DNA of 64,000 nucleotides from IMGVR_UViG_3300028275_000006:124001-188000; one strand, 5' to 3'; positions 3,928 through 10,888 are shown, counted from the stretch's first letter. Notes: generated by a model not told the origin, from the letters alone. Numbers and translations: made by a program.

Positions 3928-4163
3928 TTATTAGTAAGATGTCCCGAGAGTTTTGGTTTGGGTAAGGCCATCCGACGGTGCGATTCGTCCCTCTCTTTGT
4001 CTAGCCCAACATGAAGTTCTTGTAGTCTCAATCCGCTCACCTTGCACCGGCGCTTGATACATATACTCTACAGCATTAAAGTTTATAACTTCAATTAACA
4101 AAAACTTCCGATCTTTGTTAACTCCTTGCGGATGCTTTTAGAACCTTAACTACTTACTAATAA
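3928..4163 (-). ncRNA. candidate stem-closed ncRNA F
   Basis: 11-bp terminal inverted repeat TTATTAGTAAG/CTTACTAATAA; internal hairpins incl. CCGCAAGG. Confidence 0.45.
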
Positions 4164-4165
4164 AA

Positions 4166-4434
4166 GGGGTGGAGAGAGAAAGGCAAGTAATAGACTGGAC
4201 AATGTACAAGCGGGCTCTATAAAGATACCCTTAACAAGTCACAAGGCGCAAAGCACAGGGACCTGTATATTTCCAGTTAGCAACTCACAAAGTCGATTAA
4301 TATATAGAACTGGTTCACACAAGCACGAAACGTTTTCAAGACGTTTTGCCAGTAGTTGATGTTCGGTCTCTATAAGAGATCAAACCTTAGGCATGTAGCC
4401 TAAGTCTGTCTATCCTAATCTCCTTCTCTACTCC
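4166..4434. ncRNA. candidate stem-closed ncRNA G
   Basis: Ends complementary over ~30 nt (GGGGTGGAGAGAGAAAGG..TAGAC / GTCTATCCT..TCTCTACTCC); no convincing ORF. Confidence 0.45.
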
Positions 4435-4463
4435 AGGCTCGGGCTTTCGCCTTTGCCAAAACT

Positions 4464-4537
4464 TGGTTGCGGGACCTGGAATCGAACCAGGATCTAGAGC
4501 TTATGAGACTCTTGAGTTACCGTTTCTCTATCCCGCG
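4464..4537 (-). tRNA. initiator-type tRNA-fMet(CAT)
   Basis: C1:A72 mismatch, loop CT-CAT-AA, CCA. Confidence 0.85.
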
Positions 4538-4541
4538 ATAA

Positions 4542-4676
4542 CTTTATAGGTGCTCTCTGTTCGACTCGAACGAAACCTGCTGAGCTCCTTATCTTCCTGG
4601 CACTTTCGGTGGGTAGTCGACTTAGCACCTAACTCGTGTTATCCAGTGTAGTTCAGCTCAGAGAGCATTTATAAAG
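4542..4676 (-). ncRNA. candidate stem-closed ncRNA A with T-loop-like hairpin
   Basis: Terminal stem CTTTATAAATGCTCTCTG/CAGAGAGCACCTATAAAG; TTCG-TTCGAGT-CGAA hairpin. Confidence 0.5.
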
Positions 4677-4872
4677 TGTCTAGCCACTCCCACCACAGGA
4701 GCCCTAAACCGAGCTGTTACTCTGTCCACTAGCCTTTCCATTTAGACGGTGCTGAGGTCCGCCTTTGTGATTTCTCAAGTCGCTTTAAACAAGCCTTGCG
4801 GTAGATCCAATGCACCGAGCCATTAAGGTGTAGCAATTACCTAACTCTATCACGCTGAGTTAACGCGGGGTC
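4677..4872 (-). ncRNA. candidate structured ncRNA H sharing a motif with the GOLLD-like RNA
   Basis: TAGTGGACAGAGTAACAG (4714-4731) is 15/18 identical to 7212-7229; CCGCAAGG hairpin. Confidence 0.5.
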
Positions 4873-4874
4873 TG

Positions 4875-5447
4875 TTACAGTAAACCTTCTGCTTGCAGAA
4901 CTGCTTCTGTTTTGTCAGACAATTGGATAGTTGTCTGAACATTTAACTCTAGGATTTCATCCTGAAGTTTTTGTTTCTGCTTTTTAGCAGTTGCCACTCT
5001 ACGACGGAATCCGTCTAGATCTTCACGAGTGAGCACACTAGTGTCTACTGTGTCGTTGTAGCCATAGATGCTACGACGGTTTTCGCTTTTGTCGTTACGG
5101 ATCTTGTCCAAACGACCTGCTACAACCTTTGCGCTTTCGCGAACGGTCTTACTAGCCAATCCGTTGTAGAATTGGATTTGTTTTTCTAGATGTGCAACAT
5201 CGGCCAATCTAGTGTCGATTCTAACTTCTGTGTTAGCACCGCTGACACTTTTACGAATCTCGTAAAGTGCTTCCACTAACGCATCTCTGCGTGTAAGGTT
5301 GTCGCAGAGTGTTCCTGCAACTTTGGAAATTTCTTGTTCCGCTTCTTGGAACTCGTTGATTTTTACTGTGGTCTCAAACTGGAAACCTTTGACGGTATCG
5401 TTGATACTGTTCTGAAGTGCATTTGCCTTACGTAGGGAGATATTCAT
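4875..5447 (-). CDS. coiled-coil hypothetical protein
   Basis: Start MNISLRKANALQ with RBS; heptad-rich; loosely reminiscent of DIP1984-type proteins. Confidence 0.7.
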   Translation of the reverse strand: MNISLRKANALQNSINDTVKGFQFETTVKINEFQEAEQEISKVAGTLCDNLTRRDALVEALYEIRKSVSGANTEVRIDTRLADVAHLEKQIQFYNGLASKTVRESAKVVAGRLDKIRNDKSENRRSIYGYNDTVDTSVLTREDLDGFRRRVATAKKQKQKLQDEILELNVQTTIQLSDKTEAVLQAEGLL

Positions 5448-5513
5448 TTGTTTTTCCTTTAATGTTTCTATTATACAATCTTTTAAATCTAAATCAATGC
5501 CTTTTGGCAAAAC

Positions 5514-5589
5514 TGGAGCGGGAGACGAGGTTCGAACTCGCGACATTTACCTTGGCAAGGTAATGCTCTACCAACTGAGCTACTCCCGC
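5514..5589 (-). tRNA. tRNA-Gly(GCC)
   Basis: Canonical cloverleaf with CCA. Confidence 0.95.
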
Positions 5590-5637
5590 ATATGAAGAAC
5601 CTAAGGCAAAGTTTATAACTTATCCAAAGGCCATATA

Positions 5638-5713
5638 TGGTACACGGTACGGGAATCGAACCCGTCTTACTGACGTGAAAGGCCAGTGTCCTAAACCGAT
5701 AGACGAACCGTGC
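5638..5713 (-). tRNA. tRNA-Glu(TTC)
   Basis: Canonical cloverleaf with CCA. Confidence 0.95.
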
Positions 5714-5719
5714 ATTACT

Positions 5720-5795
5720 TGGCTCCCCAGGGTGGGATCGAACCACCGACACCCTGATTAACAGTCAGGTGCTACTACCGCTGAGCTACTAGGGA
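5720..5795 (-). tRNA. tRNA-Asn(GTT)
   Basis: Canonical cloverleaf with CCA. Confidence 0.95.
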
Positions 5796-5802
5796 ATAAA
5801 CT

Positions 5803-5877
5803 TGGTACCTGGTGACAGTTTCGAACTGCCGACCCTCTCGGTGTAAACGAGACGCTCTACCACTGAGCTAACCAGGC
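5803..5877 (-). tRNA. tRNA-Val(TAC)
   Basis: Canonical cloverleaf with CCA. Confidence 0.95.
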
Positions 5878-5887
5878 AAACTAACAT

Positions 5888-5964
5888 TGGTCGGAGTACA
5901 AGGATTCGAACCTTGGACCCTCTGGTCCCAAACCAGATGCGCTACCAGACTGCGCTACACTCCG
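5888..5964 (-). tRNA. tRNA-Pro(TGG)
   Basis: Canonical cloverleaf, G37, CCA. Confidence 0.95.
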
Positions 5965-5969
5965 AATGA

Positions 5970-6045
5970 TGGAGCGGGAGGCGAGAGTTGAACTCGTCTA
6001 TTTCAGTTTGGAAGACTGACGTGTAACCACAAACACTTCACCCGC
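5970..6045 (-). tRNA. tRNA-Gly(TCC)
   Basis: Cloverleaf, loop CT-TCC-AA, CCA. Confidence 0.9.
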
Positions 6046-6051
6046 ATATTT

Positions 6052-6135
6052 TGGTGCCCCAGGAGAGACTCGAACTCTCACGGCTCTCGCCACTGGCTTC
6101 TAAGACCAGCGTGTCTACCATTCCACCACCAGGGC
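6052..6135 (-). tRNA. tRNA-Leu(TAG)
   Basis: Class II cloverleaf with long variable arm, CCA. Confidence 0.95.
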
Positions 6136-9722: not shown

Positions 9723-9725
9723 ATT

Positions 9726-9800
9726 TGGTGGAGGCCGAGGAAATCGAATCCTTCTAGACATCTTCCTTGCAAGGGAAGACCGTAGCCCACTACTGCCCCC
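9726..9800 (-). tRNA. tRNA-Ala(TGC), reduced D loop
   Basis: G3:U70, loop CT-TGC-AA, D hairpin GTAG-TGGG-CTAC, CCA. Confidence 0.8.
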
Positions 9801-9885
9801 AAATTGGTGTTAGTTTCTATACCACCCATTGAAACTAACAAACATTGAGAGAACATGGATGAACCCACAAGATCTCTATTTGCTC

Positions 9886-9960
9886 TGGTATAGCGTACGG
9901 GGATCGAACCCGCCTAGTCACCTTGAAAGGGTGATGACCTCCCCAGAAGTCGAACGCTAT
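9886..9960 (-). tRNA. tRNA-Glu(TTC), second copy
   Basis: Cloverleaf, loop CT-TTC-AA, CCA. Confidence 0.9.
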
Positions 9961-9966
9961 GTAAAT

Positions 9967-10040
9967 TGGTTCCTGGACCGAGAATTGAACTCAGAATGAC
10001 CGGTTATCAGCCGATTGTTATACCATTTAACTATCCAGGA
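9967..10040 (-). tRNA. tRNA-Ile(GAT)
   Basis: Cloverleaf with CCA. Confidence 0.93.
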
Positions 10041-10130
10041 ATAATACTATACAAAAAGAAACTAACGACAATGCGCTATGCACCCAGAGTCTATAGTTCC
10101 TGGCTGTGGTTAGTTTGTTTTTATACACTA

Positions 10131-10225
10131 CCATATGGAAGCACTCTTATGCCTTTTTCGTCATAAGATGGTGGCCCGTCCTTACTACTGACGCTATGCG
10201 ACCAGTTAAGAATGCTTTCATATGG
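10131..10225 (-). ncRNA. candidate stem-closed ncRNA B
   Basis: CCATATGAAAGCATTCTTA/TAAGAGTGCTTCCATATGG with one A:C mismatch; begins at the CCA of tRNA-Lys(TTT). Confidence 0.5.
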
Positions 10226-10297
10226 TAGGGGCACAGAGAATCGAACTCTGATTTACGGGTTAAAAGCCCGCTACTTTAACCATTAAGTTATACCCCC
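10223..10297 (-). tRNA. tRNA-Lys(TTT)
   Basis: Cloverleaf with CCA. Confidence 0.93.
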
Positions 10298-10300
10298 ATA

Positions 10301-10376
10301 TGGTCCCTGCTGTGAGATTCGAACTCACACCTCATTGATTAAGAGTCAAGTGCGCTACCATTGACGCTAAACAGGG
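10301..10376 (-). tRNA. tRNA-Lys(CTT)
   Basis: Cloverleaf with CCA. Confidence 0.92.
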
Positions 10377-10438
10377 TTGTACGTATTGATTTGATTTTAC
10401 GTGCCAACCCTAGACCATACGGGAGATCTAGAGTGACA

Positions 10439-10459
10439 CTAACGTTTAGCACGTTTCAT
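10439..10459 (-). CDS. micro-ORF MKRAKR-amber
   Basis: Strong SD AAGGAGAG; TAG stop leads into a long hairpin. Confidence 0.4.
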   Translation of the reverse strand: MKRAKR

Positions 10460-10471
10460 GCTACTCTCCTT

Positions 10472-10534
10472 TTAATATTTTTTCAAAACTTGATACAACA
10501 CGAACATTATAACTAACACTACAAGTACTGCCAT
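10472..10534 (-). CDS. 20-aa hydrophobic micro-protein MAVLVVLVIMFVLYQVLKKY
   Basis: SD TAAGGAG, single TM-like stretch. Confidence 0.55.
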   Translation of the reverse strand: MAVLVVLVIMFVLYQVLKKY

Positions 10535-10547
10535 AATATTCTCCTTA

Positions 10548-10637
10548 TGGTCCCCCGTTGAGGAATCGAACCTCATCCTGGACCTTATCTAGATTAATCG
10601 GTTATAAGCCGACCTGCTCTCCATGAGCTAACGGGGG
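10548..10637 (-). tRNA. tRNA-Ile(TAT) with 21-nt variable insertion
   Basis: Stem GTCGG/CCGAT, loop CT-TAT-AA, 90 nt, CCA. Confidence 0.8.
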
Positions 10638-10645
10638 ATATAACC

Positions 10646-10723
10646 TGGAGCAACGGGTCAGATTTGAACTGACGGTTTTACGGATTTGCAATCCGTTGCA
10701 TTGGGCCTCTCTGCCACCGTTGC
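10646..10723 (-). tRNA. tRNA-Cys(GCA)
   Basis: Cloverleaf, U73, CCA. Confidence 0.93.
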
Positions 10724-10728
10724 ATTAT

Positions 10729-10803
10729 TGGCGTACCCCCAGGGACTCGAACCCCGACTAGCAGTTTTGGAGACTGTCGTGCTGCCATTAACACTAGGGA
10801 TAC
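10729..10803 (-). tRNA. tRNA-Trp(CCA)
   Basis: Cloverleaf, G73, CCA. Confidence 0.93.
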
Positions 10804-10826
10804 ATAACACTCTCTTTCGAAAGTGT

Positions 10827-10888
10827 GTATTAAAGCATACTACTCATCGGCTACTGCCATTTGATTGTTCGGCAGTATGCTTTAATAC
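10827..10888 (-). ncRNA. candidate stem-closed ncRNA D
   Basis: Perfect 15-bp stem GTATTAAAGCATACT/AGTATGCTTTAATAC around a 32-nt loop. Confidence 0.45.

Follow-up and report, generated by a model that had tools for sequence, protein, structure and literature searches.

Stem-closed elements in a phage tRNA array

The stretch of DNA analyzed here, referred to as the window, comprises the 64,000 nucleotides (nt) at bases 124001-188000 of IMGVR_UViG_3300028275_000006, a 212.5-kb virus record in the IMG/VR collection with an estimated completeness of 55%. It is the transfer RNA (tRNA) array region of an uncultured freshwater jumbo phage that occurs in river metagenomes; a megablast search for close relatives among sequenced phage isolates returned matches to tRNAs only. 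With positions counted from the first base of the window, ARAGORN placed 31 tRNA genes at 3147-10803, all on the minus strand. Strong sigma-70-like promoters were found on the same strand both within and upstream of the array, whose minus-strand transcription starts from promoters of the host type. Interleaved with the tRNAs are elements closed by long helices. Several of these have in common a helix module that we call the clamp, and the variable sequence enclosed by each clamp is called its cargo.

A first-pass annotation of the window had listed seven long terminal stems in spacers between the tRNAs. All of them are present, on the minus (tRNA) strand, and the elements that they close are designated below by a single coordinate each (10888, 10225, 10121, 9475, 7116, 4676 and 4163). 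An inverted-repeat scan of positions 2800-11600 put these stems at the top of its list, including the minus-strand pairs 10045-10070/10105-10130 (element 10121), 10128-10149/10207-10228 (10225), 4541-4559/4659-4677 (4676), 7037-7054/7099-7116 (7116) and 10827-10841/10874-10888 (10888). The stem originally given as 10053-10121 in fact spans 10045-10130, and an eighth stem that had been missed lies at 8007-8025/8157-8175 (8175), where pairing is perfect once minus-strand G-U pairs are allowed. When the entire 212-kb record was scanned for long-range helices, the 8-kb array contributed four of the eight with the best pairing. Folding z-scores were lowest for 10888 (-7.1), 7116 (-5.8), 8175 (-5.4) and 10225 (-4.6), followed by 10121 (-2.4), 4676 (-2.1), 9475 (-1.7) and 4163 (-1.6); in the case of 9475 and 4163, structure is supported by covariation in alignments and not by energy.

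In DNA as AT-rich as this region, lax helix searches turn up numerous stems by chance, which is the argument for viewing the stems as chance inverted repeats or as ordinary intrinsic terminators. However, z-scores extend down to -7, and the hundreds of conserved copies with covariation described below refute this view, to which we attach next to no probability. As for terminators, no T-run follows any clamp and none was reported in a terminator prediction. A GC-rich hairpin followed by a T-run is what defines a terminator, whereas the clamp stems are AU-rich and enclose loops of 30-140 nt.

Several finer points of the first-pass annotation had to be adjusted. The A:C mismatch that it placed 7-8 base pairs (bp) into three of the stems is there in 10225 and 7116, but 4676 has AA opposite CC instead. 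Element 10225 does begin with the CCA of a tRNA, namely tRNA-Lys(UUU) at 10223-10297, and a second start of this kind was found in 8175, which begins with the ACCA of tRNA-Tyr. The term inter-tRNA spacer does not suit 7037-7116, which comes after a GOLLD RNA rather than after a tRNA. The loops do differ in sequence, as the grouping of cargos below confirms.

A conserved helix module in viral tRNA arrays

With the 190-amino-acid (aa) protein encoded inside the array (4875-5447, minus strand) as the query, 67 related viral loci were collected at 41-100% identity, and BLAST and nhmmer located homologues of every element among them, often in a different order. Alignment of these homologues showed that closing stems have sequence in common between elements, and a scan for helices of 7 bp, a mismatch and another 7 bp revealed a recurrent unit. 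A shared stem module with an A.C mismatch at a specific position, as the first-pass annotation had supposed, is therefore present and conserved across viral contigs. Of 63 loci subjected to a motif-guided search, 37 contained a total of 90 arm pairs, corresponding to 76 non-nested modules, and a pattern scan of the entire collection matched at least 120 viral contigs. In total, more than 150 viral contigs contain about 230 unique copies, nearly all within tRNA arrays. Although the search pattern made no such demand, the outer stem was complementary in 81 of the 83 copies checked. The same pattern matched only 14 times in 596 Gb of cellular genomes. Ten of these matches are due to chance, with neither outer pairing nor tRNAs, and the other four are true copies on three small, tRNA-rich contigs of metagenome-assembled genomes that are phage-like in appearance. 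A lax genome-wide motif scan allowing three substitutions gave noise (36 matches versus about 26 in shuffled sequence).

The anatomy of the clamp was worked out from 232-234 unique copies. Read on the tRNA strand, it consists of seven covarying base pairs, an A.C or C.A mismatch at position 8, the seven conserved pairs AAACACA/UGUGUUU, a U.G at position 16 and two to three further pairs. The outer seven pairs exist in many versions, among them CCAUAUA/UAUAUGG, CUAUUAU/AUAAUAG, CUAUUCU/AGAAUAG, UUAUAUG/CAUAUAA and CUUUAUU/AAUAAAG, while the sequence of the inner arm stays constant. Helices are 17-20 bp long with a mode of 18, many copies add flanking A-U/U-A pairs, and the median module length is 84 nt. 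The opposition at position 8 is A.C in about half of all copies and C.A in 12% (29 copies), together 149 of 234; otherwise it is A-U or G-C (about a quarter), and G.U occurs in just 2 of 234. The U.G at position 16 is found in 76-78% of copies (178/234) and is replaced by C-G or U-A in the remainder, and position 17 is U-A in 91%. Pairing of the outer stem is specific to the individual module: on average 5.18 of its 7 positions are paired, compared with 3.90 +/- 0.06 when the 3' arms are permuted among modules.

Rfam scans of the window, both at the gathering threshold and at permissive settings, detected only tRNA, GOLLD and transfer-messenger RNA (tmRNA), as did a gathering-threshold scan of seven related loci, such that no Rfam family matches the stems. 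A literature search likewise found no description of the element. The clamp is apparently a widespread RNA module that has not been described previously.

The orientation of the module is fixed. By strand-symmetric detection, the direction of its signature agrees with that of the tRNAs in 195 cases and is opposite in 2. Together with the exchange of A.C for C.A without G.U, this fixed orientation argues for selection on the transcript rather than on a DNA element able to insert either way. The count of G.U against A.C at ordinary stem positions is null; the strand question is settled by the orientation of positions 8 and 16. That null count is among the arguments for an alternative in which the arms are DNA-level sites, either the terminal inverted repeats of a miniature mobile element or attC-like cassette sites, and the RNA hairpin is incidental. 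The precise exchange of cargo between identical arms and flanks would also fit such sites, as would the appearance of one cargo family behind different tRNAs and the shuffled order of elements among relatives. However, the copies are confined to tRNA arrays in an orientation tied to transcription, there is no general target-site duplication, and covariation of the outer stem is seen inside individual genomes. G-U pairs of the tRNA strand are used in cargo hairpins and in the larger RNAs of the array, and in 165 of 218 cases this strand gives the better cargo fold. Moreover, no tyrosine recombinase, Y1 transposase or reverse transcriptase was found in five records, namely the one studied here and four relatives that are 92-100% complete. 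We consider DNA-level sites highly improbable. Specific candidates were also rejected individually: a miniature inverted-repeat transposable element because of the orientation bias, the generally unduplicated flanks and the lack of a Y1 transposase (the sole transposase family searched), and a retron non-coding RNA because no RVT_1 domain occurs in the five records. The core sites of integron attC elements follow the consensus RYYYAAC/GTTRRRY, which by inspection the arm consensus does not resemble, and no Phage_integrase domain is present in the five records.

Membership of the individual window elements was judged by scoring their arms with a weight matrix built from 232 copies, the consensus of which is CCAUAUA-A-AAACACAU / GUGUGUUU-C-UAUAUGG. 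The canonical case is 7116 (7037-7116, minus strand), located 6 nt past the 3' end of GOLLD and 5 nt before tRNA-Asp. It reads CUAUUCU-A-AAACACAU ... GUGUGUUU-C-AGAAUAG, both of its arms rank first genome-wide, and a hairpin with an AUA loop in its cargo is kept by compensatory changes. The clamp 10225 (10128-10228, minus strand), whose 5' arm runs from the tRNA-Lys(UUU) CCA, is composed of 7 bp, the A.C and 11 bp around a cargo of 57 nt, and its arms rank third and second in the 212-kb record. A weaker match, with both arms still within the top 1e-4 of the genome, was obtained for 10888 (10825-10890, minus strand), which lies upstream of tRNA-Trp and has a stem of 15-17 bp, an A-U pair where the mismatch usually sits and a 30-nt cargo with a covarying hairpin. 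It has orthologues in the related loci L032 and L012, and the L012 copy shows canonical arms with A.C. The words GAUGAG and GAAC in the 10888 cargo were considered as a possible hammerhead or kink-turn, but the order of the core and the invariant U do not fit, and there is no Rfam match.

Like 10888, the remaining members are diverged. Element 10121 (10045-10130, minus strand), situated between the 10225 clamp and tRNA-Ile, scores more weakly and is included only by virtue of its 3' arm and of an orthologue in L007 (2281-2362) that has canonical arms with A.C. Element 4676 (4542-4676, minus strand) has 7 bp, AA/CC and 9 bp, with a T-arm in the cargo beside the 3' arm. Its arm scores are marginal; 11 of 24 pairs show compensatory changes among its homologues, the mismatch is converted to A-U pairs in L064, the cargo T-arm is kept, and positional homologues in L043 and L011 have clamp-like arms. 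Arm scores are also marginal for the additional clamp-like element 8175 (8007-8175, minus strand), which is located upstream of GOLLD and has a stem of 19-20 bp with G-U pairs that occur only on the minus strand and a conserved 137-nt cargo. Scores for 9475 and 4163, on the other hand, are at background. The proposal that the seven original elements form one family thus holds for 10888, 10225, 10121, 7116 and the diverged 4676, but not for 9475 and 4163, which are without the shared arms. Away from the array, a clamp-like hairpin at 21936-22007 (minus strand; arms AAGGACAU/GUGUUUUU; z-score -4.0) constitutes the intervening hairpin of a permuted, two-piece tmRNA (21691-22154, minus strand), where it stands between the internal CCA and the RNase P-type 5' end of the coding piece. 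This tmRNA is of the betaproteobacterial type, which hints at the host; taken with the contigs of metagenome-assembled genomes, it suggests freshwater bacteria similar to Polynucleobacter.

Clamps are positioned with respect to the ends of stable RNAs. In the first set of loci, 19 of 76 modules start with the CCA of the upstream tRNA and 11 of 76 finish with the first two bases of the next one; many of the others end 3-14 nt short of it. Corresponding numbers for the second set are 59 of 81 modules starting at a tRNA CCA and 32 of 81 ending at the first base of the next tRNA or no more than 2 nt from it. Lys(UUU) accounts for 49 of 85 upstream tRNAs, and Met or His is the most frequent downstream one. 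Modules are also found 5-7 nt past the 3' end of GOLLD in the window and in L007, L036, L050 and L063, and in the window and L036 one immediately precedes the 5' domain of GOLLD. Because clamp ends coincide with CCA 3' ends and with tRNA 5' ends, tRNA processing would liberate the clamp, in agreement with what the first-pass annotation had predicted.

Cargo, larger RNAs and transcript levels

Cargos range from about 30 to 280 nt and differ from copy to copy. A first set of 53 module sequences, made up of 46 unique sequences from related loci and the window's seven, fell into 43 cargo groups, and a second set of 73 unique cargos fell into 60. When phages with tRNA-Lys genes matching at 97% identity or more were compared, arm identity was 92%, whereas cargos were no more alike (0.50) than shuffled sequence (0.51). 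Unrelated cargos can even be found between identical arms and 76-nt flanks that are 100% identical on both sides, as in L133 versus L166. A single cargo family, moreover, can stand behind different tRNAs.

This wholesale replacement of cargo between identical flanks would suit diversifying pressure, and it forms part of the case for the clamp as a protein-binding handle. Excised modules would then persist as small ribonucleoproteins with a dedicated host or phage protein, and the cargos would work in trans, possibly countering host defenses, as decoys, aptamers or regulators. Such a handle is the general form of the Y-RNA-like idea put forward in the first-pass annotation. It would account for an inner arm and two non-Watson-Crick positions that are conserved beyond what a generic double-strand nuclease needs. 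Structure is kept in some cargo families, cargos show a threefold enrichment of T-loop words (GGTTCGA, for example), and the favored site is behind tRNA-Lys(UUU), a frequent target of host anticodon nucleases. However, cargos as a group fold just slightly better than shuffled sequence (mean z-score -0.49), a search for antisense targets of the window cargos in the phage genome gave no more matches than shuffled controls did, and the five records lack a TROVE/Ro gene. The small modules are at background RNA depth as well, albeit in libraries that do not capture small RNAs. Overall, we judge a protein handle to be somewhat unlikely. A more specific version, in which a dedicated protein binds the helix through its A.C and U.G and the cargos are rapidly exchanged decoys or aptamers against tRNA-targeting defenses, would explain the preferred site directly behind tRNA-Lys(UUU), but we regard it as quite doubtful.

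The two elements without clamp arms are, judging from their alignments, separate conserved structured RNAs. The first, 9475 (9263-9475, minus strand), is about 213 nt long with its own covarying closing stem and a T-arm-like hairpin. Its alignment contains 48 pairs, 27 of them with compensatory changes, and the family occurs in 13 + 34 loci. The second, 4163 (3928-4163, minus strand), is about 236 nt long and lies between two tRNA-Met genes; 18 of its 31 aligned pairs are compensatory, and its closing stem covaries by eye. An absence of compensatory changes in homologues had been named in advance as grounds for abandoning the idea of a structured RNA class, and such changes were instead found in 4676, 9475 and 4163.

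GOLLD RNA is known to assemble into a nanocage, and its function is not known. In the window it extends over 7122-7585 according to Rfam and approximately 7122-7934 according to RNA depth (minus strand), with clamps flanking it on both sides. It matches RF02032 over the full model length with 207.2 bits (gathering threshold 150), and its 5' part is conserved in 22 loci. Embedded in it at 7449-7522 is a tRNA-Lys(CUU), which is skipped or replaced in RNA contigs of related strains, with a joint at 7447-7520 and loose ends resembling another tRNA. The embedded tRNA therefore seems to be exchangeable.

Expression was assessed in six river metatranscriptome runs that contained the region, with the contigs of four placed on 4950-10900. 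Depths are those of assembled contigs, possibly including close relatives, from libraries prepared without small-RNA capture, and RNA ends are not visible in them. GOLLD (7139-7934) reached depths of 3,000-32,000, whereas flanking sequence was at about 5-30. The bin 9328-9526, covering the 9475 RNA, had depths of 174, 1872 and 2688 in three runs, and the bin 7935-8133, belonging to the 8175 module, had depths of 366 and 389 in two. Accumulation was thus seen only for the larger RNAs, namely GOLLD, 9475 and, in part, 8175.

These depths bear on the possibility that clamps are passive and remain uncut, serving as insulators for the folding of tRNAs and GOLLD or as terminal hairpins that block exonucleases. 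Modules do abut both ends of GOLLD and many tRNAs, their helices are stable, and the cargo seems largely free to vary. However, the depth of thousands over GOLLD has dropped to 1-80 at the 7116 module, which suggests that this module is not left attached to GOLLD, although its small size may also hide it. In addition, a clamp paired with the CCA of a tRNA must go before that tRNA can be charged, and a passive role leaves the conserved sequence and the mismatch unexplained. We regard such a role as unlikely.

A number of other features were recorded in and around the array, all on the minus strand. Further conserved non-coding blocks at 4164-4463, 4677-4874 and 10889-11010 recur in 29, 24 and 6 related loci, respectively, and probably represent leaders or more structured RNAs. 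At 3235-3345, a sequence of about 110 nt resembles a tRNA in its 7-bp acceptor stem, T-arm and terminal ACCA but has a long interior, and it was called by neither ARAGORN nor Rfam. A degenerate tRNA-like run occupies 9554-9885, within which 9563-9635 scored 31.6 bits with the Rfam tRNA model and received no ARAGORN call. Two tiny reading frames with ribosome-binding sites lie inside the array at 10440-10547, where the DNA is conserved in 12 loci; the first encodes a hydrophobic peptide of about 20 aa and the second a peptide of 6 aa. The 190-aa protein used as the query above is of unknown function and is encoded within the tRNA array in all 67 related loci. It was considered as a partner of the clamp; of 118 short loci retrieved with the clamp motif, only 9 encode it, a count that says little either way. 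Among sequenced isolates it matches solely a Caulobacter phage CcrPW hypothetical protein (24% identity), the gene for which is not located in a tRNA array. Just downstream of the array is a gene for an RNA ligase of the T4 Rnl1 type (157-1107; phrog_562, E-value 3e-50). Such a ligase fits tRNA repair, and it could conceivably ligate excised hairpins. Outside the array, ARAGORN also detected, along with the tmRNA, one further tRNA and a tRNA with a CUA anticodon (15927-16000) that it labeled Pyl, a possible amber suppressor.

Proposed processing of the array transcript, and known systems

The interpretation that we favor, tentatively and with a little less than even confidence, is that clamps are RNA punctuation helices for the processing of a polycistronic array transcript. 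In each clamp, the trailer of a stable RNA would be paired with the leader of its downstream neighbor; trailers frequently begin at a tRNA CCA or just past GOLLD, and leaders frequently end at G1 of the following tRNA. Host enzymes, probably RNase III together with RNase P, would cut the clamps to yield tRNAs, GOLLD and small hairpin RNAs. Such a cut would leave short single-stranded tails on the neighboring tRNAs, to be finished by 3' exonucleases and RNase P, and would at the same time free the cargo as a hairpin-closed small RNA. Both the cleavage and the enzyme responsible are inferred. The ideal RNase III substrate is 22 bp long, with many cellular substrates at or below 20 bp; GC pairs in the proximal box are inhibitory, and mismatches at the target site lead to single-strand cuts (PMC3867540). 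With its 17-20 bp, AU-rich composition and near-central mismatch, the clamp agrees with these substrate properties.

Several observations weigh against punctuation. Clamps are absent from most tRNA junctions of the same arrays, and the compensatory changes with which some cargo families are conserved would be superfluous in a pure spacer. The low depth of the small modules in the RNA data belongs here as well, as does the lack of a G.U excess over A.C at ordinary stem positions (167 versus 156). No RNase III gene was found in the 55%-complete record or in the four relatives that are 92-100% complete; a host enzyme therefore has to be assumed. Finally, the conserved AAACACAU/GUGUGUUU arms and the two non-Watson-Crick positions exceed the needs of RNase III, which recognizes little sequence. 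This excess suggests a sequence-specific partner, and a protein handle accordingly stays a serious rival to RNA punctuation.

In any case, the clamp is a compact element of about 84 nt that marks tRNA and GOLLD ends and comes in hundreds of natural variants, with the A.C and U.G positions offering a clear target for mutation. Phage tRNA arrays are now viewed as loci for counter-defense and translation support, but their non-tRNA content is mostly unannotated and the cutting of their transcripts has hardly been studied. If the clamp is a processing signal, it provides a handle on the maturation of GOLLD and of phage tRNAs. If it is a protein handle with swappable cargo, it represents a new kind of modular phage RNA system. 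The analysis also adds two further conserved RNAs, one of which is abundant in environmental RNA.

Among known systems, Y RNAs were the analogy drawn in the first-pass annotation. Like Y RNAs and YrlA, the clamped elements have a long stem formed from both RNA ends with an internal irregularity, and some cargos have T-arms. YrlA-type RNAs mimic tRNA, whereas the T-arm of 4676 is on the 3' side, which is the ordinary tRNA order. The analogy did not hold up when tested: the search for TROVE/Ro, which covered the record and the four relatives, gave no match, and the best hits of the Rfam YrlA model (24.8 bits against a gathering threshold of 69) fell on tRNA-Arg and tRNA-Gln and on no stem-closed spacer. 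The nearest concept in the literature is that of T4 RNAC and RNAD (species 1 and 2), small non-tRNA RNAs of unknown function that are co-transcribed within the T4 tRNA cluster (PMC3014915, PMC9697503). They resemble the clamped elements in being non-tRNA small RNAs of a phage tRNA region but are two single genes. To our knowledge, they have no shared closing helix, conserved mismatch or swappable cargo.

Correia-type elements are short repeats with conserved terminal inverted repeats that form RNA hairpins, and their transcripts are cut by RNase III. Clamps differ from them in being fixed in orientation, hypervariable inside, restricted to tRNA arrays and without general target duplication or, in the five records, a Y1 transposase. 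In the RNase III hairpins of the T7 early region and of rRNA operons, AU-rich double-stranded RNA of about 20 bp also punctuates a polycistronic precursor. The intervening sequences of 23S rRNA are RNase III-processed hairpins of a similar kind. Mismatches or internal loops at cut sites and variable apical sequence are further features in common (PMC3867540). What sets the clamp apart from these hairpins is its conserved arms, two fixed non-Watson-Crick positions, siting at CCA ends and cargo that is exchanged as a unit. GOLLD and ROOL, lastly, occupy the same genomic niche, the tRNA islands of phages (10.1101/2024.12.08.627333), but these are large RNAs with a single fold, in contrast to the clamp, a small helix of modular build whose content varies.

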